A stretch of 64,000 bases of DNA, taken from sequence record NC_061448.1, one strand, 5' to 3'. The translations under genes and the position numbers were made by a program. Below, in pieces: positions 1,707 to 34,771 of this stretch (its first letter is position 1; every line of letters begins with the position of its first letter). Below the pieces are notes generated by a model. That model had not been told where the DNA came from. It ran no database searches and saw nothing but the letters and a program-made list of their open reading frames with translations.

Positions 1707-2502
1707 GCATTACGAAGGCCCATACGGACTTGTTGAGTCTGACAACATGGTTCCCCGCTGGACGTACCCTGTTAAGCATGGACAGATACGCCGAGTAGAA
1801 GCGTGGGAACTTGATAAGATGCCAAACACCACTATGCGTGTGCGTATGGTGAATGACATTCATGCAATCCACAGTACACCTGTAGAGGAACACGATGACG
1901 ACTCACTCGACCTCGACGAAGAAGCCGCAGCGATCTCAAAAACTGAGTCCCGACTTCTTATCAAGCCTCGACTCAATGAAGTCCGTTCCCGTAAAAATAA
2001 AGACCACGTTGGTCCAGAAAACGTCTTCACAGTCCCTGCCGAAGTAATCGACGGCACACTGGACAGTGTTGACGATCACGCGAAAACGTTCCGTGACTAT
2101 CTGCTGCATCAGGTATTCAGCCCGATACTTGGGTTTGATATTGCAGCCGGTGAAGTAGAAGCAATCTCGAAAGACTGTCTCAAAACAGACCTAGAGATTG
2201 ATAGCGAGCTTGTGCCTTACATTGAGCGCGTAGGGCTTGCTAACATCATCGGTGTGATGCTGTCGAAGTCGCAGTCAGTGCCTGAGTCTGTACGCACAGA
2301 CGTGCTGAAAGACTGGCTAATCAAATCGTTCGATGACGTGCGAGCAGAGCACAAAGCGAAGACAGGCAGTAATACGTTACGTGCCCAGCTTCGTCGCTTG
2401 ATGCACGGTAACGACGAGCTGGTTGCCAAGGGTGCTGGCATAGGTACAACACGCGGATTTACTGAATACAGGAAGAAACAGAACGAGAATGGCCAAGCCT
2501 AA
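1699..2502 (+). CDS. hypothetical protein; candidate terminase small subunit by position only
   Basis: 267-aa ORF overlapping the terL start; no diagnostic motif recognised. Confidence 0.55.
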   Translation: MGKHYEGPYGLVESDNMVPRWTYPVKHGQIRRVEAWELDKMPNTTMRVRMVNDIHAIHSTPVEEHDDDSLDLDEEAAAISKTESRLLIKPRLNEVRSRKNKDHVGPENVFTVPAEVIDGTLDSVDDHAKTFRDYLLHQVFSPILGFDIAAGEVEAISKDCLKTDLEIDSELVPYIERVGLANIIGVMLSKSQSVPESVRTDVLKDWLIKSFDDVRAEHKAKTGSNTLRAQLRRLMHGNDELVAKGAGIGTTRGFTEYRKKQNENGQA

Positions 2503-5317
2503 AAAAGGCCCAGCGTTCACGATACGTCCGAAACGAATAGCTGCATTCGATGCGCTGCTTGGTGACGACGTTAAAGTGGACGCCTCATCCGACGTAGATT
2601 TTTTGTCGGAGAATAGTTCGAGTGCGATTAACTTTCTCGAAAAGGGCGAGGTTAACATTGTTGACCTCGTTGAAGGTGCTTTAGAACAACGCACACTTGT
2701 GCCGCGTGATTTGAAGTTTGATGACAGTTCAATGCCCCGCGCCAAGAACTTCCTTGAGTGGTGTACTAGTCCCGACTTCTTAAAAGCCGACCCGTATCTC
2801 GAACAGGCCATGATTGGTCTGCGCTTGTTTGGTGAGATCTGCGTTAAGTGCTCACCGAACTTGCAATGGATGTACACTGAAAACCATGAGCCACAAGAAA
2901 CGACTGCCGCGATAGAGACACACTTACACCTGCTACACAATGGTGTGTGCCCTCATTGCGGCGCTCGTCGTTCTGAGATGATTCGCAGGAAAGAGATGAA
3001 CTTCTACAACGAACTGGCGGTGAACGCCGGACAGCGTTGTGTGATTGCTTCAACTCCTGTGTTGACCTCTCGTGGCGTCATGCCTATCGGACACATGATG
3101 ATTGGTCATGACAGTCCTGGGTTCCACAAGCCGCAGCGTAACTTCAATGCGCATAACGGTCGTGAGATCAAGAACGTCAGTCAAGTCTACGTGTCCGATG
3201 AAGCACCAACCAAAGTCGTCACGCTCGCTAACGGCATGTGGATTGAAGCAACCCATGAGCACCCTGTGCGCACTGAGCAAGGCTTTAAGAAAGTGTCTAA
3301 GCTGCGTGGCGGTGAGCGTATCGAAATCAAACTCGGTACGAACTCATGGGGCAAGATACAGCGTCCAGTCTCTATCTACGATGCTGGTCTGTCTACGCGA
3401 GAAGAAGCGCTGCGCTATATTGCTGAACGCAGTGTGCCTCTCGGCGAAAAGATGCAGTACGTTACCGAAGACCCAGATGCACTTCAAATGGTGTGGTCGA
3501 TTCTAATCAACGCTGGTCACATGCCGCAGATCGTTCACGGTACGCGCATGTGGAGCTTGGTGTATGACTTGACTGAACAACCAGAATGTCGCTCTGTTCA
3601 CGTTGAGGTAATCTCCGTTGATGATGGTACTCCGCAGGTCACGTATGACTTGCAGATGGAAGGACTGCCGCAGTTCGTTGCGTCTGGCCTTGTGCACCAC
3701 AACAGCGGGAAGTCAGTTGTAGTAGCGATGATCTCGACCTATCTTACGCACAGGCTGCTTATGTCGCAGTCGCCTACTGGCATCTTGGGTATCGACAGCA
3801 CAACCGTATTGCACGGTACGTTCGTTGCCCTGACCCAGAAGCAAGCGTCTGATACACTCTGGACTCCGTACTTCAACTACATCATGGGTAGTCCGTGGTT
3901 CCAAGCATATCATGATCTGATTCGCAAACACGAGCGTCGTTATGGCATCGAGGTGATGAAGATTCGCGACACGTTCGTACTATACGGACACAGGAACTTC
4001 GTTATCTATCCTGCCGGGCCTGATGGTCGTATTCTTCGTGGTCGAACCCGTGTACTGGCGGTAATCGACGAAGTGGCGTATTTCGACAACGACGCCCAAT
4101 CCAAGAAGATCAAAGTCAGTGCTGGTGCAGTGTACGGCGCACTCGACCGTTCACTCGCAACTGTTCGTTCTGCCGAGATGCGGCAAGTCGAATCTGGTTA
4201 TGATGAAGCATTCACGGGATATTTCTGTAACATCAGTAGTCCGGTTCACGCCCGTGATAAGATTAACGAATTGCTTCGTATGTCAGTAGGATCTGAGAAG
4301 CTGCTGGGTATTCATGCTCCTACATGGAAGATGAACCCGACAATGCCGCGCACCTCTGAGTTCTTAGTCGAAGCGTTTCGTCGTGACCCGGTAGGTGCAG
4401 CCCGAGATTACGGAGCAGAAGCACCGTTGTCTGCTAACCCATTCATCACGCAGCCTACGTTTATCGCAGATGCTATACGTGAGAAAGGTCGTTCGATGTG
4501 TACGTATACCCATCACATCATTCGACACAAAGACGGTGAACGCCAGCGCTATGGTAGTCTCGTCAAAGCGGCAACGACAACCAAAGCGTCGATACTTGCA
4601 ATTGACGCAGGCTTCTCGAACAACAGCTTCGCACTCGTCACAGGCTCACGCGATGACGCAGGGATTATCAGTGTCGATTGTCTGGTAGAGATCGTACCGA
4701 AGCCCGGCATCCCTCTGAACTACACCCTCATATTTGACGAGCTATTGATTCCGCTATGTCGTGCGCGTAACGTTCGCGTAATGCTTGCTGACCAGTGGCA
4801 GTCACTCAAGTTGTTGCAGGATGCGAAACTGAAAGTGGATTCCATCGAGGAGTCCGACCAGTACAGCTTGAAGTATCAGGATATGTGGACTGTTAAGACG
4901 ATGTTCGAATCGCAGCCTAGTCGTATCAGTCTGCCTCGAATGACTCACGCTAAGACTATCGCTGACACTTTGAAATACGATGGTGATGAATACCCTCAAT
5001 GCTTCGAGAACAAACCAACAGAGCACTTGATCATGCAGTTGCAGACTGTGCAAGATACAGGCCGCAGCGTAATCAAGAACACAGGGGCAACCGATGACTT
5101 GTGGCGAGCAATGGCACTCATGGTCTACGGATTCGAGTGTGGTGAGTACGACGAGTATCTGACGAAAGCGCCAGAGGTAGCTATGAATCGTGACCCGAAT
5201 CGCTTGGGTCGCGTGGCACATAGACTCAACTCTGGCACTGCGGGTAGTTCACGACAGGCGCTGTCTGGTGGTCGAGTTCTTGGTTCTGCTCGTACCCGAA
5301 TGATTGGCCGTAAATAA
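2489..5317 (+). CDS. terL: terminase large subunit precursor containing an intein
   Basis: After intein removal, Walker A reads AGQR-SGKS. Walker B VLAVIDEVAY, RNase H-like nuclease motif ILAIDAGFSNNSFAL and C-terminal DDLWRA are present. Confidence 0.9.
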   Translation: MAKPKKGPAFTIRPKRIAAFDALLGDDVKVDASSDVDFLSENSSSAINFLEKGEVNIVDLVEGALEQRTLVPRDLKFDDSSMPRAKNFLEWCTSPDFLKADPYLEQAMIGLRLFGEICVKCSPNLQWMYTENHEPQETTAAIETHLHLLHNGVCPHCGARRSEMIRRKEMNFYNELAVNAGQRCVIASTPVLTSRGVMPIGHMMIGHDSPGFHKPQRNFNAHNGREIKNVSQVYVSDEAPTKVVTLANGMWIEATHEHPVRTEQGFKKVSKLRGGERIEIKLGTNSWGKIQRPVSIYDAGLSTREEALRYIAERSVPLGEKMQYVTEDPDALQMVWSILINAGHMPQIVHGTRMWSLVYDLTEQPECRSVHVEVISVDDGTPQVTYDLQMEGLPQFVASGLVHHNSGKSVVVAMISTYLTHRLLMSQSPTGILGIDSTTVLHGTFVALTQKQASDTLWTPYFNYIMGSPWFQAYHDLIRKHERRYGIEVMKIRDTFVLYGHRNFVIYPAGPDGRILRGRTRVLAVIDEVAYFDNDAQSKKIKVSAGAVYGALDRSLATVRSAEMRQVESGYDEAFTGYFCNISSPVHARDKINELLRMSVGSEKLLGIHAPTWKMNPTMPRTSEFLVEAFRRDPVGAARDYGAEAPLSANPFITQPTFIADAIREKGRSMCTYTHHIIRHKDGERQRYGSLVKAATTTKASILAIDAGFSNNSFALVTGSRDDAGIISVDCLVEIVPKPGIPLNYTLIFDELLIPLCRARNVRVMLADQWQSLKLLQDAKLKVDSIEESDQYSLKYQDMWTVKTMFESQPSRISLPRMTHAKTIADTLKYDGDEYPQCFENKPTEHLIMQLQTVQDTGRSVIKNTGATDDLWRAMALMVYGFECGEYDEYLTKAPEVAMNRDPNRLGRVAHRLNSGTAGSSRQALSGGRVLGSARTRMIGRK
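3038..3703 (+). mobile_element. 222-aa intein in the terL Walker A motif, no intact homing endonuclease
   Basis: Block A CVIASTPVLTSRG, block B ATHEHP, blocks F/G YDLQMEGLPQFVASGLVHHN, +1 Ser. Confidence 0.9.
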
Positions 5318-12233: not shown

Positions 12234-13004
12234 ATGAGCAACGTTGATAAAACAATGCCTGTCGGCCGCTGGGAGTTCAATGAGCCAGTTGCTTCTGTGT
12301 TCGATAACATGCTGCAAAACTCAATCCCCTCCTACGACCGTATGCGTGATCTGACCTATCGTCTGGGTCGTCAGTTCGTAACTCCCGGTACTGCTATCGT
12401 TGACCTCGGTGCGTCACTCGGCCGCGCTATCGAACCGTTCTGTGCTGAGTTCGGTGAGTATCGTTACCATCACGCAGGTGACCGTCCTATTCCTGACGAA
12501 GAAGTCGGTAACCTGTACTGCTGCTACGAAGTCGCGCCAGCAATGCTTGAGCGTCTGCGTGAAAACGAAGTGCTGAAACAGGCTAAAGCGAAAATCAGTA
12601 GCGAGTCGCTGGTGGAAGTAGACACGTTCCGCTTCGACGAACAGGTTGAGTGTTCACTCATTCTGTCTGTGCTTACTCTCCAGTTCACGCCGATTGAACA
12701 TCGTCAGCACATTCTGGAGAAAGTGTACGATAGCCTTGAGAAAGGCGGCGCGTTCATCCTCGTTGAGAAAGTTCTCGGTGATGACAACTTCCTCGACCGT
12801 CTGCTGGTAGATACGTACTACGGCATGAAAGGCGATAACGGTTACTCGCAAGAAAGCATTGCGACGAAACGTAAAGCGCTTGAGGGCGTACTCGTACCTG
12901 TCAAAGCCGCGTGGAACGAAGAACTGCTGCGCAAAGCTGGCTTCGACCGCGTTGAATGTTTCTACCGCGATCTTAACTTCGCTGGATGGATCGCAATTAA
13001 GTAA
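12234..13004 (+). CDS. cmoA: carboxy-S-adenosyl-L-methionine synthase (CmoA homolog)
   Basis: Aligns by eye end to end with E. coli CmoA: WEFNEPVASVFDNMLQNSIPSY, DLGASLG, LTLQF, GGAFILVEK, NGYSQESIATKRKALEGVL, LRKAGF, LNF. The Arg199-equivalent is retained (12870-12872). Confidence 0.88.
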   Translation: MSNVDKTMPVGRWEFNEPVASVFDNMLQNSIPSYDRMRDLTYRLGRQFVTPGTAIVDLGASLGRAIEPFCAEFGEYRYHHAGDRPIPDEEVGNLYCCYEVAPAMLERLRENEVLKQAKAKISSESLVEVDTFRFDEQVECSLILSVLTLQFTPIEHRQHILEKVYDSLEKGGAFILVEKVLGDDNFLDRLLVDTYYGMKGDNGYSQESIATKRKALEGVLVPVKAAWNEELLRKAGFDRVECFYRDLNFAGWIAIK

Positions 13005-13011
13005 GGGAAGT

Positions 13012-14277
13012 ATGATGAAAGTAAACGGGCGTATCTTAGCAATCGTGCCTCACAAGACTCTTCTGGACAGAACCAAGTCTGGTGTTGGTGCGTACATTGA
13101 TGGACTCGAAGACTATGGCTTCTGCGACTTCATCACTGACGGTGAAAACAGCTCTGTTACCAAGAGCCAGTGGTTTAACTACGGTGATACCACTCTGAGC
13201 GACGGGTACAAAGTTGGTCACATTCAAAGTGCTCTGCTCGAAGCGCTTGATCGCACTCCGTATCGTGCAATCATCTGTAGCACCTACGAAGCTGTCGAAG
13301 CTGCTGTCGGCCTTGGGCTGCCTAAGATTATGCCTGTTTACTACCGTTCGCATAACAGCTTCCTGTTGACGCAAGACCTGAACGGACTTGGTGCTGAGAA
13401 GATGCACCGTGCGCTGCTGCAAGCTCCTGTTACAGGTCTGCGTATCTTAGCGAACTGCGACTCGACTGCGCGTGTGCTGTCTGAGATTTATAAAACTGAG
13501 GCTGCTGTCGCGTACAACGCATTCAGTGTATCAGACTACAATCCACCAGCGAAGCGTAAACCCTCGCTGCTGATTATCTGTCGCTACGAAAAGGTTAAGC
13601 GTCCTACGTTTGCTGCGCGTATCGCTGCTGCGTCTGGTCTGCCTGTTCGTGTGATGACCGGCTCTGACCGTCAAGTCAAGAGCTGGGAGAAAGAGCTTGC
13701 TGATGCAGGCGTGAAAGATTACCAAGTCGTTAGCGGTCTGTTCGGTGACGAGAAGATGGCGTTCATCGGACAATGTACCGTAGCGCTTTCGTGTGCCGAA
13801 GTAGAGTCATTCGCTAACGGTGTACGTGAGACTATCCCGTACTGCCCTACGTTCGTTGTGCAAACTTCTAAGTACGATTGGGCGCGAGACTATACGCGCT
13901 TCTGCTCTGAGAACAAGCACATCCACATTCGCACTGTTGATCGTGTGACTGCGAAAGAGGTGGAAGAACTCGGCAACGAGATTGCTTACTGGGCTTGCAC
14001 TAAGTACCTGACAAAAGCTGAACGTACTACGCTGCTGACCGAATGGTGCAAGCGCGTAGACAAAGGCTGGGCTGACTTCATGAAGAATGCAGTCGTGCCC
14101 GATGACGGCAAGCCGATGAAGACCGACCTGTCGAAAGAACTCGAAGAAAAAGGCGTAGTAGACTGGTCGAAGACGCAGACGTTAATGCGTACTGTAAAAG
14201 CTATACACAAGTGTCATGCTCGTATGGGCCTGACGTTCGATGGCACCAAAATCAAAACGAAAGGGAAGAAGAAATGA
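13012..14277 (+). CDS. GT-B fold glycosyltransferase (GT4-like or phage DNA alpha-glucosyltransferase-like)
   Basis: SGVGAY near the N-terminus, ICRYEKVKRP, ESFANGVRE (ExFG...E-like). Start corrected to ATG 13012. Confidence 0.7.
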   Translation: MMKVNGRILAIVPHKTLLDRTKSGVGAYIDGLEDYGFCDFITDGENSSVTKSQWFNYGDTTLSDGYKVGHIQSALLEALDRTPYRAIICSTYEAVEAAVGLGLPKIMPVYYRSHNSFLLTQDLNGLGAEKMHRALLQAPVTGLRILANCDSTARVLSEIYKTEAAVAYNAFSVSDYNPPAKRKPSLLIICRYEKVKRPTFAARIAAASGLPVRVMTGSDRQVKSWEKELADAGVKDYQVVSGLFGDEKMAFIGQCTVALSCAEVESFANGVRETIPYCPTFVVQTSKYDWARDYTRFCSENKHIHIRTVDRVTAKEVEELGNEIAYWACTKYLTKAERTTLLTEWCKRVDKGWADFMKNAVVPDDGKPMKTDLSKELEEKGVVDWSKTQTLMRTVKAIHKCHARMGLTFDGTKIKTKGKKK

Positions 14278-15308
14278 ACGTGATTGGTGATATCTATAAT
14301 ATTCCGCAACCGTACGCGATGTTCTGTGGTAACGCCACGACGAAAGCAATGGCGAAGATCACTGCCGGTATGGTTGAGTGGGCGTCAGAGAAAGTCTGCT
14401 GTGTAGTTGACGACGCTAACAACCTGTTCCCTGAAATGCCTCACGTTGAAATTCGTGACCTCGATAAGACCGATGCAGAAACTCTGGTTATCGGGTTTGC
14501 CCCGTTCGGCGGTCAGATTAACGAAGACATTGATCGCGCTATTCGCTCTGCGCTGTCTCGTGGCCTGAACGTTGCTGCTGCGCTGCACGTTAAGCTGGCA
14601 GACAATGCTGAATACTGCGCTCTGGCTAATCAGTATGGAGTGAAGCTGTATGACTTCCGCCACCACCCTGAGCAATATCCTCTGGGCACTGGTCTGCCTC
14701 GTGCCGGTGTTCGTGTTCTTACTGTTGGTACTGACTGTTCGTGCGGTAAGAAATACACTGCACTCGCACTGACCAAGAAGCTGACCGAGCTGAAACAGAA
14801 AGCTGTGTTCTGCGCTACAGGCCAAACGGGTTTCCTGATTAGCGGTCGTGGCATCAACAACGACACTGTGGTTGCTGACTTCCTTGCTGGTGCTGCTGAG
14901 TGGCTGTCACCTGCTGACGAAGAAGCTATCTATCTGATTGAGGGTCAAGGTGCGCTGCGTCATCCAGCTTACACTGGTGGCAGCATGAGTCTGATTGCTG
15001 GCTCTCAGCCCGACGCTCTCGTTGTCTGCCACACTGTTGGCCGCAACTTCATGCTGAACACCGAGCGTGAGATCAACCTCGTTGACGAGATCGCTGCTAA
15101 CATCGACGCTGCTGCGATGCACGACTGGTACCCTAAAGTTGTTGGTATCAGTATCAATTTCTGCGAAGTGAAGATGACGAAGAAAGAGCGTGAAGTATAT
15201 CTGCGTAGTCTTTCTTTGAGCAGTGGCTACGTGGCTTTCGACCCACAAGCCGGCGGTGAAGAGTTCGACCGCGTTGCTCACTACATCACGACGCTGAAAC
15301 GCCGATGA
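14274..15308 (+). CDS. DUF1611 family protein (DgcN-like, P-loop)
   Basis: VGTDCSCGKKYT, ATGQTGFLI, ADFLAGAAEWL, IEGQGALRHPAY, GSQPDALVVCH. Confidence 0.85.
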   Translation: MNVIGDIYNIPQPYAMFCGNATTKAMAKITAGMVEWASEKVCCVVDDANNLFPEMPHVEIRDLDKTDAETLVIGFAPFGGQINEDIDRAIRSALSRGLNVAAALHVKLADNAEYCALANQYGVKLYDFRHHPEQYPLGTGLPRAGVRVLTVGTDCSCGKKYTALALTKKLTELKQKAVFCATGQTGFLISGRGINNDTVVADFLAGAAEWLSPADEEAIYLIEGQGALRHPAYTGGSMSLIAGSQPDALVVCHTVGRNFMLNTEREINLVDEIAANIDAAAMHDWYPKVVGISINFCEVKMTKKEREVYLRSLSLSSGYVAFDPQAGGEEFDRVAHYITTLKRR

Positions 15309-16249
15309 AAGTCTTAATCGACCGTGCCGCGTTAGCGAGTAATGCGGCCTATTTAAACTCACTCGCTCCGTCCATGATTCCGGTTGTGAAAGGTAATTTC
15401 TACGGACATGGTTTAGATTGCGTGACAGCATTCGCCTTAGGGTTTGAGGTGCTCGCAGTTCATAGCGACCGCGAAGCACTTGCGCTGCGTCAGTTAGAAC
15501 TCGACAACACGCTGTTAGTTCTCGGCGGCACCGACAGTCTCATGTGGAATACAGTGCCTGTGCTGAACGCAGAGCAAGTCGGTACGTATGGAGGCCGATA
15601 CGCTGTGTTTGCTGATTGGGGTTGTCGTCGTATCAACGTCAAACCTGAACAGCTTACGCATCCACCAGCGTTGATTCTCGTTCACTCGGATGACTATCGT
15701 GTGCCTGTGTCTGAGTACGACGCTAACGAGATCGCCCAGCGCTACAACGTGCCTCTGTCTATGCTGTCTGTTGGTTCGAGCATGAACGTGCTTAATCAAT
15801 ACGCACCGAAGTTGAAGCCGCGTGTTGGCATGGCGCTTACCGGATATAGTAGCGATGAAACTGTGAACGGTAATTTGTGCGTAGCGAAGACAGTGCTTGC
15901 TCGTATCTGCGATAAGCTGGATGCGGGCCGAGTATTCGGTTACGGTGCATTAGTACCGAACTGCGCGGACAAGTTCTTGTACTCGATTGATGTGGGTTAC
16001 TACGACAACCTGTATCAGTCTGACAACAACACACCTGTGCATTGCCCTGACGTGCCACACGCGCAAGTCACGTTGCTCACAGGCGTTGCCCACGCAATCA
16101 GCATGAACCATGCCTTCGTATTGTCAGATACTGAGCTACCGTTTGACTCCGATATTGAACTACTCGGACCTAACGTTCGCGCAGACTATCTGGCTAAACT
16201 TCACGGAACAACAACTGCGAATATTTTAAGGCTGGGTAATCATGGCTAA
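15305..16249 (+). CDS. alr: PLP-dependent alanine racemase-like enzyme
   Basis: VVKGNFYGHG (PLP Lys29), PRVGMALTG, GYG, VGYYD, ISMN (vs VCMD). Confidence 0.82.
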   Translation: MKVLIDRAALASNAAYLNSLAPSMIPVVKGNFYGHGLDCVTAFALGFEVLAVHSDREALALRQLELDNTLLVLGGTDSLMWNTVPVLNAEQVGTYGGRYAVFADWGCRRINVKPEQLTHPPALILVHSDDYRVPVSEYDANEIAQRYNVPLSMLSVGSSMNVLNQYAPKLKPRVGMALTGYSSDETVNGNLCVAKTVLARICDKLDAGRVFGYGALVPNCADKFLYSIDVGYYDNLYQSDNNTPVHCPDVPHAQVTLLTGVAHAISMNHAFVLSDTELPFDSDIELLGPNVRADYLAKLHGTTTANILRLGNHG

Positions 16250-17111
16250 ACACGTTTTGCGCAAGCTGTTTGAACAGCACGTTAAAGCAGAGGTCAAAGA
16301 CAACAAGGTGGCAGTGCTGCTGTCCAGTGGTCTTGACGGACTCGTTAGCGGGCTTGCTGCCCATGACTTAGGAAAGAAGGTACACGCCTTTACTTTCCAG
16401 ATGGGCGACAACGAAAGTTTCGACAGCAAACACGCGCGTAAAGTCGCAGAGAAGATGGGCTGGGAGTTCACGCTTGTGAAAGTACCGACGTCTGACAGCG
16501 CTATCGTGCAGGGTTGGAAAGCGCTTCACGCGAAGTACCGCTGTGTTAAGAAGCGTGACTATGAGTGTGCATATCCTATGGTGTATTGCTACAAGGCAAT
16601 CAAGGATGCAGGTTACAAGTACGTACTGAGCGGCCTTGTCGCTGATGCTTACTTCTGTTTTGCGCGTAACACTCACATCGCTAAAATCAGCGGCCCGCAT
16701 AGCGTACTCGAAAAGTTCGACGAGTATCGCAAAGCATACTGGGCACCGTGGTTCAAGAACGGTAAGAAGTCTCTCGGCGTTGACGGTTATAACCCAAGCG
16801 GTATGCTGCAACACGAAATGCTGTGCGACTCTTTCGGCCTGACCCACGTTAACCCGTGGCTGATGAAGAAAGTCCATGACTACTTCATTGGTCGTTCGTG
16901 GCAAGAACTAAATCAACCCAAGCAGAAAATGCCAATAACAGAAGCATGGGCTGATCACATCGCGGTTGTAGGCCATCGCCCGCATCGCGGTTATCAAACA
17001 GAAGCTGGAGTACCTGCGTACTTCGAACGCTTACTGGATAATCCTGAGATCAACTTCAACGGTCGCAAGCGTGTTATGGATCTTGCGCGTGATTGGTCAA
17101 CGAGGACTTAA
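16242..17111 (+). CDS. asparagine-synthetase-like ATP-dependent amide ligase lacking the glutaminase domain (CmoY-like candidate)
   Basis: PP-loop VAVLLSSGLDG, FTF, D...ARKVAE, YVLSGLVADAYF; only 289 aa with no Ntn domain. Confidence 0.75.
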   Translation: MAKHVLRKLFEQHVKAEVKDNKVAVLLSSGLDGLVSGLAAHDLGKKVHAFTFQMGDNESFDSKHARKVAEKMGWEFTLVKVPTSDSAIVQGWKALHAKYRCVKKRDYECAYPMVYCYKAIKDAGYKYVLSGLVADAYFCFARNTHIAKISGPHSVLEKFDEYRKAYWAPWFKNGKKSLGVDGYNPSGMLQHEMLCDSFGLTHVNPWLMKKVHDYFIGRSWQELNQPKQKMPITEAWADHIAVVGHRPHRGYQTEAGVPAYFERLLDNPEINFNGRKRVMDLARDWSTRT

Positions 17112-31935: not shown

Positions 31936-32640
31936 ATGGCAAAAACTGCTATCAAAGCAAAGGACGGAAAAAAGAAAGACGGGTTGAAGTTTGATCTCAA
32001 AAAACTCAACTCAGTCGCTCAACTGAAAGGCGCTGACTATAACCCGCGTTTCATTACAGACAGTCGCTTGAAAGCACTCGAAGGTTCTTTGGGTAGCTTC
32101 GGCGACTTGTCTGGTATCGTGTTTAACAACAACGTCAAATCCGGTGTGTTGATCTCAGGCCACCAGCGTCTGAAATCTATCGACGGTTGGAAGACTCGTA
32201 TCGAGATCCAAAAGACCGTTGACAAACACGGCACTATCGCTCTGGGCTACATCCACGCGACGCATCCGAAGAAGTCTGATAAAGTGATCAGCATTCCTCT
32301 GCGTATCGTGAACTGGACCGATAAGAAAGCGGAGTACGCAGCGAACATCGCAGCGAACGCCCACGGCGGTGAGTTCGATAACAAGAAGCTCGCCAAGCTG
32401 GTGGAAAAACTCGATCTCAACACAATCAAGCCGCAGTTACTCGGCCTTGACCCGTTAGAGATTCGCGGTCTGCAACAAAAGCTGAAAGTACAGGCTGTTG
32501 TGCAAGACGACAAACGCGCTGGCAAGACTACCGGCCAGATGAACGGTAGTACCGGTAAGTTCAATGAGTACAACGCTGACGATGTTGGCGATACTCTGAA
32601 CTGCACCTGCCCGCGCTGTGGATTTAAGTTCGAGGGATAA
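31936..32640 (+). CDS. ParB/Sulfiredoxin-like N-terminal domain protein with a C-terminal zinc ribbon
   Basis: YNPRFI, SLGSFG, ISGHQRL, NAHGGEFD, CTCPRCGFKF. Confidence 0.8.
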   Translation: MAKTAIKAKDGKKKDGLKFDLKKLNSVAQLKGADYNPRFITDSRLKALEGSLGSFGDLSGIVFNNNVKSGVLISGHQRLKSIDGWKTRIEIQKTVDKHGTIALGYIHATHPKKSDKVISIPLRIVNWTDKKAEYAANIAANAHGGEFDNKKLAKLVEKLDLNTIKPQLLGLDPLEIRGLQQKLKVQAVVQDDKRAGKTTGQMNGSTGKFNEYNADDVGDTLNCTCPRCGFKFEG

Positions 32641-32641
32641 T

Positions 32642-34771
32642 ATGATCATCAAGCCGCCTACGATGAAGGAAATCAACAAGCTGGATAAACCCTGGCGTGG
32701 TATGAGTTTCTTCGCAGGTTGCGGTGGTTCTTCTACCGGTCACAAGATGGCCGGTATCAATATCTTGCTGAGTAACGAGTTTGTTGACCCAGCAAGAGAG
32801 TCATACGAAGCGAACCACCCGACAACGAAAGTGCTGCCTCATGACATTCGCCGCCTCGACCCCGGTAAGCTGTTACGTTACTGCGGTCTGGATAAAGGTG
32901 AACTTGATTTACTTGACGGTAGTCCTCCTTGCTTTACCGAAGACACTATCATTCATACAGCAGACGGCATGAAGTTCATCTCGGACATGAACGTCGGCGA
33001 CAGAGCGATGACCAGTGTCGGGCAGTATTACCCTGTATACGACACAATGGTCAGACCGTATGTCGGTACGATGCACAAAGTCGAAACGCTGATCAGCAGC
33101 AACAACGCAACGCCTGAGCATCCGTTCTTTGTTAGACGTGCGCTGGCGGAAGGCGGTTACTCTGATCCGTTCTGGTGTGATGCGAAAGACGTGCAAGAAG
33201 GCGACTTGCTTGGCACTCCTCGCGTTACGCCTGATCAACAGCCGGGCGTGTATTACGATCAGATTGCGCAACTGCCGAAGATGATTCAGCAGTGGGTGTG
33301 CATCCCTGAGTTCTGGTGGATGGTAGGACACTGGTGTGATCGCGGTTCAATCGAAACAGTTAGCGGCGTTGAAGTCGTTAGCTTCGAATCGCACACCAGC
33401 CTTGAAAACGCGATGATTGAGCAGGCGTTTGACGCGCTTAAACTCAGTAGCCTGAATCGCATTGACACGATGACTGCGCAACGCAAAACGTTCCGTACTG
33501 TTATCGACGCAGAGCTGGTGCAGTTCTTACGCCGCTTCGTCAGTCAAGGCAACAACACGTTCTCCCGTCGTCTGCCAGCAATGATGTTCCACATGAACAC
33601 CGAGTTGAAACAACAATTCATTCTCGGTTGTGCGGGGCATGACTATGTGACTGCGATGGGCACTGGCCTTGCTATCACATCAAACAGCAAACGCTTCCTG
33701 CTTGAGCTTAACTACCTGTGCTGTTCTGCATTCAATCGTCCTCTGTTTGACGGAATGATTTGGGGAGATGTTTACTTCGGTAGTCCACTGACGCCGCGCG
33801 AGCGTAACAGTTCGCGTGAGCACATCGGCTACCTGTTCTTGCAGGACGAGCACAACTTCTTCCACGAGTTCAGCGATAGCGATTCACATCTCTGGACCGA
33901 AGTGATTGAGAACCTTGCGTATCAGGCAACGTGCGACGTGTACAACTTCTCTGTTGAAACAGACGAAACGTATGTGGCTAACGGTGTTGTCGTTCACAAC
34001 TGCAAAGGCTTCTCGACTGCTGGCGTGAAAGAAGAAGGCTGGGGCAAAGAAGTTAAGTACAGCGACAATAAATATCAGCAGGTAGATGACCTGTTCGATC
34101 AGTATTGTCGTATGCTGCAAGGTATGCAGCCTAAAGTGTTCACTGCGGAAAACGTTAGTGGTCTTGTGAAGGGAATCTCGAAAGGGTACTTCCTTGAGAT
34201 CATGAAGACGTTCGACAAGCTCGGCTACTACGTGCGAGCACCGATGTTGAATGCGTGTTGGCTCGGTGTACCGCAGTCGCGTGAGCGTATCATCTTCATG
34301 GGTGTGCGCAAAGACGTAGCACATGCGCTTGGTTATAAAAATGCGCGTGAAGCTGTGCCTGATGTTATCCCGTGCGATACGCAAGCCTTCCTCGGCGATG
34401 CGTTGCCTCACATCTTACGATACAAGACGACGCAGAAAGACCTGATCAAGTATCTGCCCTCAGTTAACGGACCGATGCCAACGATTACAGCGTCTGATGC
34501 AATCGCGTATGAAACAGCGCGTTTCTCGTCTGCTGGGTTTATCGAAGACAACAAAGGTCATCGCCGTAAACTGACTATCGACGAACTGCTGGTAGTTTCG
34601 GGAATGCCGTCTGACTATAAGCTGGTTGGCAAATTCGAAGAACAGTGGGAACGTCTTGGTCGTGTCTGTGTGCCAGCAATGACACACGCAGCATCGAAGG
34701 CTTTCATCGAACATATTCTTTTGCCTTACGCGAAGAAGAAAAAGAAAAAGCCAGGCGATATATTTAAGTAA
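32642..34771 (+). CDS. C5-cytosine DNA methyltransferase-fold enzyme with an intein; predicted carboxymethyltransferase (CmoX-like)
   Basis: Motif I FAGCGG, IV SPP-C-KGFS after splicing, VI ENV, VIII QSRERI, IX RKLTIDE...GMPSDY, X LGRVCVP (Arg at the canonical GN Asn). Confidence 0.88.
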   Translation: MIIKPPTMKEINKLDKPWRGMSFFAGCGGSSTGHKMAGINILLSNEFVDPARESYEANHPTTKVLPHDIRRLDPGKLLRYCGLDKGELDLLDGSPPCFTEDTIIHTADGMKFISDMNVGDRAMTSVGQYYPVYDTMVRPYVGTMHKVETLISSNNATPEHPFFVRRALAEGGYSDPFWCDAKDVQEGDLLGTPRVTPDQQPGVYYDQIAQLPKMIQQWVCIPEFWWMVGHWCDRGSIETVSGVEVVSFESHTSLENAMIEQAFDALKLSSLNRIDTMTAQRKTFRTVIDAELVQFLRRFVSQGNNTFSRRLPAMMFHMNTELKQQFILGCAGHDYVTAMGTGLAITSNSKRFLLELNYLCCSAFNRPLFDGMIWGDVYFGSPLTPRERNSSREHIGYLFLQDEHNFFHEFSDSDSHLWTEVIENLAYQATCDVYNFSVETDETYVANGVVVHNCKGFSTAGVKEEGWGKEVKYSDNKYQQVDDLFDQYCRMLQGMQPKVFTAENVSGLVKGISKGYFLEIMKTFDKLGYYVRAPMLNACWLGVPQSRERIIFMGVRKDVAHALGYKNAREAVPDVIPCDTQAFLGDALPHILRYKTTQKDLIKYLPSVNGPMPTITASDAIAYETARFSSAGFIEDNKGHRRKLTIDELLVVSGMPSDYKLVGKFEEQWERLGRVCVPAMTHAASKAFIEHILLPYAKKKKKKPGDIFK
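32930..34000 (+). mobile_element. 357-aa intein inserted just before the catalytic Cys; degenerate LAGLIDADG-like region
   Basis: Block A CFTEDTIIHTADG, block B ATPEHPF, relics MVGHWCDRGSI and FILGCAGHD, blocks F/G VYNFSVETDETYVANGVVVHN, +1 Cys. Confidence 0.92.

Follow-up and report, generated by a model that had tools for sequence, protein, structure and literature searches.

In a 64,000-nucleotide stretch from the genome of the Erwinia jumbo phage pEa_SNUABM_1 (MZ443776 / NC_061448, 266,939 bp), hereafter the window, a gene for a predicted CmoX-type DNA cytosine C5-carboxymethyltransferase is interrupted within its catalytic motif by an intein. Positions refer to the window throughout, and all features located in it lie on the plus strand. 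The insert at 32930-34000 is a class-1 intein and not a chance resemblance. We consider it probable that it represents an old homing intein that became fixed in the jumbo-phage lineage, lost its endonuclease and was trapped, with splicing most likely being constitutive. A preliminary description of this DNA had located the intein at 32930-34003 and had raised the idea that splicing could serve as a redox-, metal- or temperature-dependent switch on genome modification; the coordinates turned out to be exact, whereas the sequence offers no positive support for such a switch.

The intein and its junctions

The precursor encoded at 32642..34771 (709 residues, with the stop codon within these coordinates and a start codon shared with annotated relatives) is composed of two exteins separated by the intein. 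The N-extein (96 residues, 32642..32929) contains motif I, FAGCGG, and terminates with GSPP, the first half of motif IV. It is followed by the 357-residue intein (32930..34000), which opens with Cys1 (32930-32932), carries T61-x-x-H64 in block B and VYNFSV..DETY in block F, and closes with H356-N357 of block G, the His-Asn pair ending at 34000. The C-extein (256 residues, 34001..34768) reaches from the second half of motif IV to motif X and has the C5-transferase fold, being matched by PF00145, TIGR00675 and the structure 8yf3_A. Its first residue, Cys+1 (34001..34003), is the splicing nucleophile, and following ligation it would be the catalytic Cys of motif IV, GSPPCKGFS. As proposed earlier, it is the PC-motif Cys that serves as +1 nucleophile (GSPP↓C...HN↓CKGFS, arrows marking the splice junctions), so the enzyme is inactive prior to splicing. 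Both residues preceding the intein, at positions -1 and -2, are Pro (window 32924-32929).

Several observations concur with this assignment. In a 25-sequence alignment, Cys1, T61, H64, H356 and N357 do not vary and the +1 Cys hardly does, and within block B (TPEH, intein residues 61-64, 33110..33121) the invariance extends to E63. Pfam recovers PF00145 (E 1.3e-37) in two halves that flank the Intein_splicing/Hint match, and the NCBIfam model intein_Cterm exceeds its cut-off of 15.6 bits with a score of 26.7. An AlphaFold2 model of the intein, with a predicted local distance difference test score (pLDDT) of 85 and a predicted template modelling score of 0.84, finds the endonuclease-bearing inteins TliVMA, PhoVMA, PI-SceI and PI-PfuI as its top Foldseek matches (E down to 2.5e-14), with free LAGLIDADG enzymes and mini-inteins ranking lower. 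In common with PI-SceI (Sce VMA), TliVMA, PhoVMA and PI-PfuI, the phage element combines Hint with an inserted LAGLIDADG domain, Cys1, TxxH, His-Asn and a nucleophilic +1 residue, although the identity is about 12% and host protein and insertion site differ; PI-SceI-type inteins are further set apart from it by the Arg in place of the motif 1 Asp, the Tyr after the motif 2 Asp and the acidic domain described below. Finally, six intein-free metagenomic orthologues (342-353 residues, 52-70% extein identity) align with the precursor with a single gap of exactly these 357 residues, and are continuous through the junction (...GSPPCKGFS...).

The host as a CmoX-type enzyme

The preliminary description had regarded the host as a DNA methyltransferase. 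A DNA-modifying enzyme of the C5-transferase fold is indeed what surrounds the intein, but a plain methyltransferase is not: the Arg of motif X, the match to 8yf3 and the presence of a CmoA gene all indicate the CmoX type. The CmoX family, described in 2025 with no mention of inteins, is defined by an SPPC motif together with a motif X Arg, R350 in SpCmoX, which binds the carboxymethyl group of carboxy-S-adenosylmethionine (Cx-SAM) and replaces the Asn of methyltransferases; the nucleophile Cys81 of HhaI aligns with Cys98 of SpCmoX, within the SPPC motif (PMC12783734). The best Protein Data Bank match of the C-extein is 8yf3_A (E 4e-30), SpCmoX of Synechococcus phage S-B43. In this alignment ERLGRVCVP of the phage enzyme pairs with ERVGRMVPP, placing the Arg of ERLGR (34661..34663), at the position of the methyltransferase Asn, opposite R350. 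SpCmoX and the enzyme studied here share the C5-transferase fold, SPPC, the motif X Arg and a CmoA partner; SpCmoX has no intein, and its identity to the phage enzyme, a predicted carboxymethyltransferase, is moderate.

The partner is a CmoA homologue at 12234..13004, a predicted carboxy-SAM synthase (TIGR00740 E 4e-43, below the curated cut-off; CmoA structure 4gek E 3.5e-31), which would supply the CmoX cofactor. With a CmoX host and a CmoA partner, the intein would act as a gate on the step that opens a DNA hypermodification pathway. On the 3' side of CmoA, the stretch 14211-17111 holds DUF1611 (E 8e-49), alanine-racemase-N-like and asparagine-synthetase/QueC-like open reading frames, which may encode enzymes that modify carboxymethylcytosine further. 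A literature search returned nothing on the biochemistry or the nucleosides of the DNA of this phage group.

A degenerate endonuclease domain

Residues 115-319 of the intein (33272..33886) form a LAGLIDADG-fold domain, in which two LAGLIDADG helices and the alpha-beta fold are recognised through Foldseek matches to PI-SceI, I-SceI, I-DmoI and WhiA, and in which G133 and G233 are invariant. The model is well defined here, with pLDDT values of 80-94 (10-residue block averages) except for low-confidence stretches at approximately 201-210 and 271-310. The catalytic motifs are nevertheless degenerate, in agreement with the preliminary description. In the remnant of motif 1, MVGHWCDRG (residues 131-139, 33320..33346), the catalytic position 8 is occupied by Arg138 instead of Asp, whereas in that of motif 2, ILGCAGHDY (residues 231-239, 33620..33646), Asp238 is retained and the next Gly is changed to Tyr, leaving the pair of acidic position 8 residues of an active LAGLIDADG endonuclease incomplete. 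The loss is not confined to pEa_SNUABM_1, as the whole Erwinia/Dickeya/Yersinia clade has R, H or N at position 8 of motif 1, while D occurs there in 41 of 75 sequences overall, and most homologous inteins at this site have kept both motifs in canonical form, ...G(R/Y)xxGDGW for motif 1 and ...GYxx(A/S)DG for motif 2. The clade falls into two subclades, and position 8 of motif 2 is Asp in group 1 and Cys in group 2, the Yoloswag/SNUABM_5/Yersinia subclade.

The charge of the domain has shifted as well. Its net charge is -5 with an isoelectric point of 5.8, congruent with the remainder of the clade (-8 to -2, median 5.8), compared to medians of +8 and 9.15 for 49 distinct homologues, among which the few acidic or neutral members are largely those with broken motifs. 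Moreover, no Pfam LAGLIDADG match is detected at E <= 1 in the precursor, and PF14528 is absent across the whole genome. With the motif 1 Asp and the basic character both lost in the lineage, the intein would no longer be able to move; the endonuclease is predicted to be dead, its basic DNA-binding character gone and the element immobile.

Asp238 leaves room for a different view, in which the intein is a still-mobile parasite that spreads by homing with an active endonuclease, perhaps a nickase relying on motif 2. LAGLIDADG enzymes that have only one active site are capable of nicking, group 1 retains the motif 2 Asp, and some discordance between intein and extein trees is found inside this group (P0007 and P0012). 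The clade-wide loss of the motif 1 acid, the Cys in motif 2 of group 2, the acidic domain where homologues are basic and the missing Pfam match all speak against mobility, as does the fact that no empty target was seen among close relatives, making this explanation highly improbable.

Motif IV as a shared insertion site

Full-length homologous inteins, with 20-27% identity, are inserted at this very point in C5-methyltransferases of the ordinary type, with Asn in motif X ('GN'). The junctions observed include FP↓C...HN↓CQPFS, SP↓C...↓CQxxS and SPD↓C...↓CTHFS, and the general pattern is P or D ↓ C ... HN ↓ C-x-x-[FYILVW]-[SC]. Examples are gp71 of Pseudomonas phage Lana and the metagenomic proteins P0023, P0030 and P0032. 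In IMG/VR, about 60 of 80 loci display a homologous intein at motif IV, where each scan used two patterns, one spanning the C-terminal junction, which favours this host, and the other internal to the intein. Further representatives occur in Mesorhizobium sp. SP-1A and in metagenome-assembled genomes (MAGs) labelled Campylobacterota, Dokdonella, Neisseria and Woesearchaeota. Among the IMG/VR loci are contigs that bear a giant-virus MAG label (GVMAG), and going by these labels the family appears to extend to giant viruses in addition to phages. Twelve such contigs (L037, L039, L043, L055, L062, L063, L066, L078, L079, L081, L082 and L087) carry C5-methyltransferases with GFP↓C...HN↓CQ(P/G)FS.

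Most of these inteins are probably mobile, considering their canonical motifs and basic domain. An example in a CmoX-type gene is provided by locus L029 (IMGVR_UViG_3300036762_000065, 241,706 bp; match 1501-2673), a viral contig of jumbo size, where an intein at the same site (SPP↓C...↓CKGFS) comprises 391 residues, combines canonical LAGLIDADG motifs with a domain of strongly basic charge (net +16) and may still be mobile. As the same site is used by dozens of homologues with mostly intact motifs, homing to a conserved motif explains the choice of site. The dual role of the Cys as +1 nucleophile and catalytic residue is then common to an entire intein family, one directed at the most conserved DNA of these genes, and is no specific trait of the phage. 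Position -1 in the family is natively Pro (Pro-Pro in the present case) or, in SPD↓C hosts, Asp (loci L029-L093 included).

Distribution, selection and descent

The intein is present in every close relative that was recovered. All 37 near-identical records from a nucleotide search cover the whole gene, and in a protein search the intein is matched in each of the 48 Erwinia and two Dickeya records that match the C-extein. All of 27 distinct relative proteins, which represent at least five named genera (Alexandravirus, Sasquatchvirus, Snuvirus, Rivsvirus and Yoloswagvirus) in addition to an unclassified Yersinia phage and metagenomic contigs of up to 267 kb, carry it at residue 97, with inserts of 347-359 residues (356-359 across the 18 group-1 sequences) and with the reading frame intact throughout. 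The preliminary description had called for a search for empty alleles: none was found among the 37 near-identical records or the 48 Erwinia and two Dickeya records, and intein-free orthologues do exist, at 70% extein identity or less and in other phage contexts. Congruently, no joint that skips the intein was seen in four public runs holding relatives, where contigs cross both junctions, a weak check as it covers contigs only.

To what extent the different parts of the gene are constrained was estimated with a codon model (GY+F1X4 on a fixed FastTree topology) for ten group-1 genes, yielding omega, the ratio of nonsynonymous to synonymous rates, of 0.090 for the exteins, 0.118 for the splicing domain and 0.150 for the endonuclease-like domain. 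Pairwise Nei-Gojobori values agree (exteins 0.04-0.14; N-extein 0-0.1). The low value for the exteins indicates that the enzyme is still needed, so the intein must splice, and we infer protein splicing of the precursor from this purifying selection on both exteins. A broken gene, with a non-splicing intein and a non-functional enzyme, could be suspected from the Pro at -1, which is unfavourable in tested inteins. Such an explanation is exceedingly improbable in light of the strong selection on both exteins, the intact frame in all relatives, the complete invariance of the splicing residues and the conservation of the pathway partners, CmoA and the ligase-like genes.

The same values raise the question of whether the insert has been domesticated, with the LAGLIDADG-fold domain having gained a new role beneficial to the phage, either in the precursor or as the free 357-residue product. 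The omega of the domain lies near those of the splicing domain and the enzyme, the domain is mostly well folded in the model, its length is constant and its acidic charge is consistent in both subclades. However, its invariant residues belong to the scaffold only (G133, G233 and a few aromatics), and no partner, motif or family match points to a new activity. Furthermore, a misfolded insert would keep a needed enzyme from maturing, which by itself would produce purifying selection. A new role for the domain is for these reasons very unlikely.

Inheritance appears to have been mostly vertical. Trees of the intein and of the exteins, the two extein parts being placed in one row with X at the junction, have the main bipartition and most subclades in common, the exceptions including P0007 and P0012. 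In the rooted extein tree, the intein-bearing clade forms a polytomy with P0036 and P0037, a topology compatible with one gain of the intein as well as with losses. P0036 is the closest intein-free CmoX orthologue (70% extein identity; gene 6001-7038 of L011, the 20,417 bp contig logan:SRR10492797). It is accompanied by thymidylate-synthase, dCMP-deaminase and Dam-like (MethyltransfD12) genes, a context that differs from that of pEa_SNUABM_1, and none of the genes called just upstream of it has a Pfam match on record.

Conserved cysteines and the question of regulated splicing

The conditional switch would imply that oxidation, for example through a disulfide between Cys1 and Cys+1, metal or temperature restrains splicing, with carboxymethylation starting once conditions become permissive. 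Cys serves as the nucleophile at both splice junctions, the one at +1 being the catalytic residue as well. Other Cys inteins, such as those of mycobacterial DnaB and of Pyrococcus/Methanoculleus PolII, are documented to respond to redox state or zinc in their splicing, and the conditional splicing of inteins such as those of mycobacterial DnaB, archaeal PolII and MoaA rests on experiments. The Pro residues at -1 and -2 may in addition slow the first step, and the intein is kept under purifying selection in every relative though unable to home, the constraint on the dead domain being unexpectedly strong.

Conditional Cys inteins resemble the phage element in that their Cys1/Cys+1 chemistry is of a kind that oxidation or zinc might block, yet they often employ a specific partner Cys, which is not conserved here. 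A redox- or metal-gated intein would be anticipated to conserve a regulatory Cys or metal site, but apart from the catalytic residues the two subclades have no conserved Cys in common; the group-1 Cys at FWC, HWC, LCC and TCD are replaced by V/I, V, IA and T/V, respectively, in group 2. The site and the Cys/Cys chemistry are moreover common to dozens of mobile homologues in unrelated methyltransferases, and retention of the element is accounted for equally well by the fact that it cannot be lost imprecisely from an active site. There is also no obvious benefit to a lytic phage in delaying a protective DNA modification, and the same phage has a second intein, located in a P-loop. Weighing these points, we regard a redox, metal or temperature switch as quite unlikely. 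The related proposal of a domesticated intein that times or gates the maturation of the enzyme responsible for initiating hypermodification, be it through redox, metal, temperature or slow Pro(-1) chemistry, is unlikely.

The second intein is a 222-residue mini-intein (3038-3703) inside the open reading frame 2489-5317 and is too short for an endonuclease domain. Its junctions, NAGQR↓CVIASTPV...GLVHHN↓SGKSVV, are such that the joined product restores a Walker-A-like P-loop, GQRSGKS, and the host is probably the large terminase or packaging ATPase. Terminase inteins have been noted in this phage group (PMC7412058). The second intein in a P-loop and the known terminase inteins fit a lineage that accumulates inteins at active sites.

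Origin, maturation and persistence

The view of a fixed and trapped homing intein can be phrased as a course of events. The element would be a vertically inherited descendant of the widespread homing inteins that target motif IV of C5 DNA transferases. Maturation would proceed through an N-S acyl shift at Pro-Cys1, trans-thioesterification to Cys+1, cyclisation of Asn357 and an S-N shift, releasing a 352-residue enzyme with an intact GSPPCKGFS motif IV and the free intein of 357 residues, and it is likely that splicing is unregulated. Together with carboxy-SAM from the phage CmoA, the mature enzyme would then start DNA hypermodification. Persistence would follow from the site, as only a perfectly precise deletion would keep the active site intact, and from the sampled relatives holding no intein-free allele for recombination. 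Since the enzyme is needed, and defects in folding or splicing would inactivate it, purifying selection would act on the whole insert.

Certain findings weigh against this account. The dead domain is under strong purifying selection (0.150 versus 0.090 for the exteins) and is near-invariant in length. In the classical homing cycle, the endonuclease is expected to decay and be lost after fixation, and the constraint on the domain could instead mean a retained function. In addition, the two subclades share 36% identity in the intein as opposed to 76% in the exteins, with a central branch of 2.29 substitutions per site in the intein tree versus approximately 0.3 in the extein tree, and an ancient replacement by another intein allele is possible. 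Lastly, natural and engineered inteins are stated to fail in general with Pro at -1, a residue reported to block or slow many inteins (PMC6486613); with this residue at the junction, maturation in the phage may conceivably be slow or dependent on conditions.

Gene start and upstream neighbour

The open reading frame 32618-34771 has no internal stops, and its program-derived start, GTG 32618, falls within the 3' end of the upstream gene. The true start of the CmoX gene is almost certainly ATG 32642, because the stop of the upstream gene directly precedes it, the Shine-Dalgarno-like GAGGGA is located just 5' and the same Met is annotated in relatives. The resulting 709-residue precursor is identical to the database protein P0002. 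The upstream gene (31936..32640), whose stop is the one just mentioned, is labelled ParB-like in RefSeq, a label that was not reproduced, with no Pfam or NCBIfam match at the thresholds used. CmoX genes have been associated with ParBc (PMC12783734), and a ParB-type neighbour is shared with SpCmoX, in pEa_SNUABM_1 going by the RefSeq label.

Relation to known inteins and implications

Active-site inteins are already known, phage DNA methylases of the N6/N4 type are known intein hosts (PMC5050341), and the combined domain architecture PF00145 + PF14890 is already found in databases. The closest described cases are DNMT-1/2 of mycobacteriophages (Kelley et al. 2016, PMC5050341), in which an intein with LAGLIDADG resides in a phage DNA methylase and is patchily distributed, in hosts of the N6/N4 type, and an actinophage methylase intein that is also LAGLIDADG-bearing and patchy (PMC9957025). 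In neither source is the insert located at a catalytic cysteine (PMC5050341, PMC9957025). The motif IV inteins of phage Lana gp71, IMG/VR, Mesorhizobium sp. SP-1A and the MAGs are far closer in that they share the insertion point and full-length homology, while differing in mostly keeping GDG, (A/S)DG and a basic domain and in residing mostly in true methyltransferases. A literature search retrieved no paper on inteins in C5/cytosine transferases, in CmoX or in the CmoX of these Erwinia phages, and no description of the motif IV intein family.

The findings have practical as well as evolutionary implications. Anyone expressing jumbo-phage CmoX should consider that in the Erwinia, Dickeya and Yersinia versions the enzyme is synthesised as a precursor split by an intein. 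More generally, the catalytic PC motif of C5 DNA transferases is the target of a large intein family, apparently undescribed, that occurs in phages, bacteria, archaea and contigs labelled as giant-virus MAGs. Its native Pro(-1) inteins could widen the protein-ligation toolbox, or show how nature copes with Pro at -1. Finally, the endonuclease domain of the jumbo-phage element, predicted to be dead and de-charged and yet under selection, would offer a clean test case for the fate of inteins after fixation.

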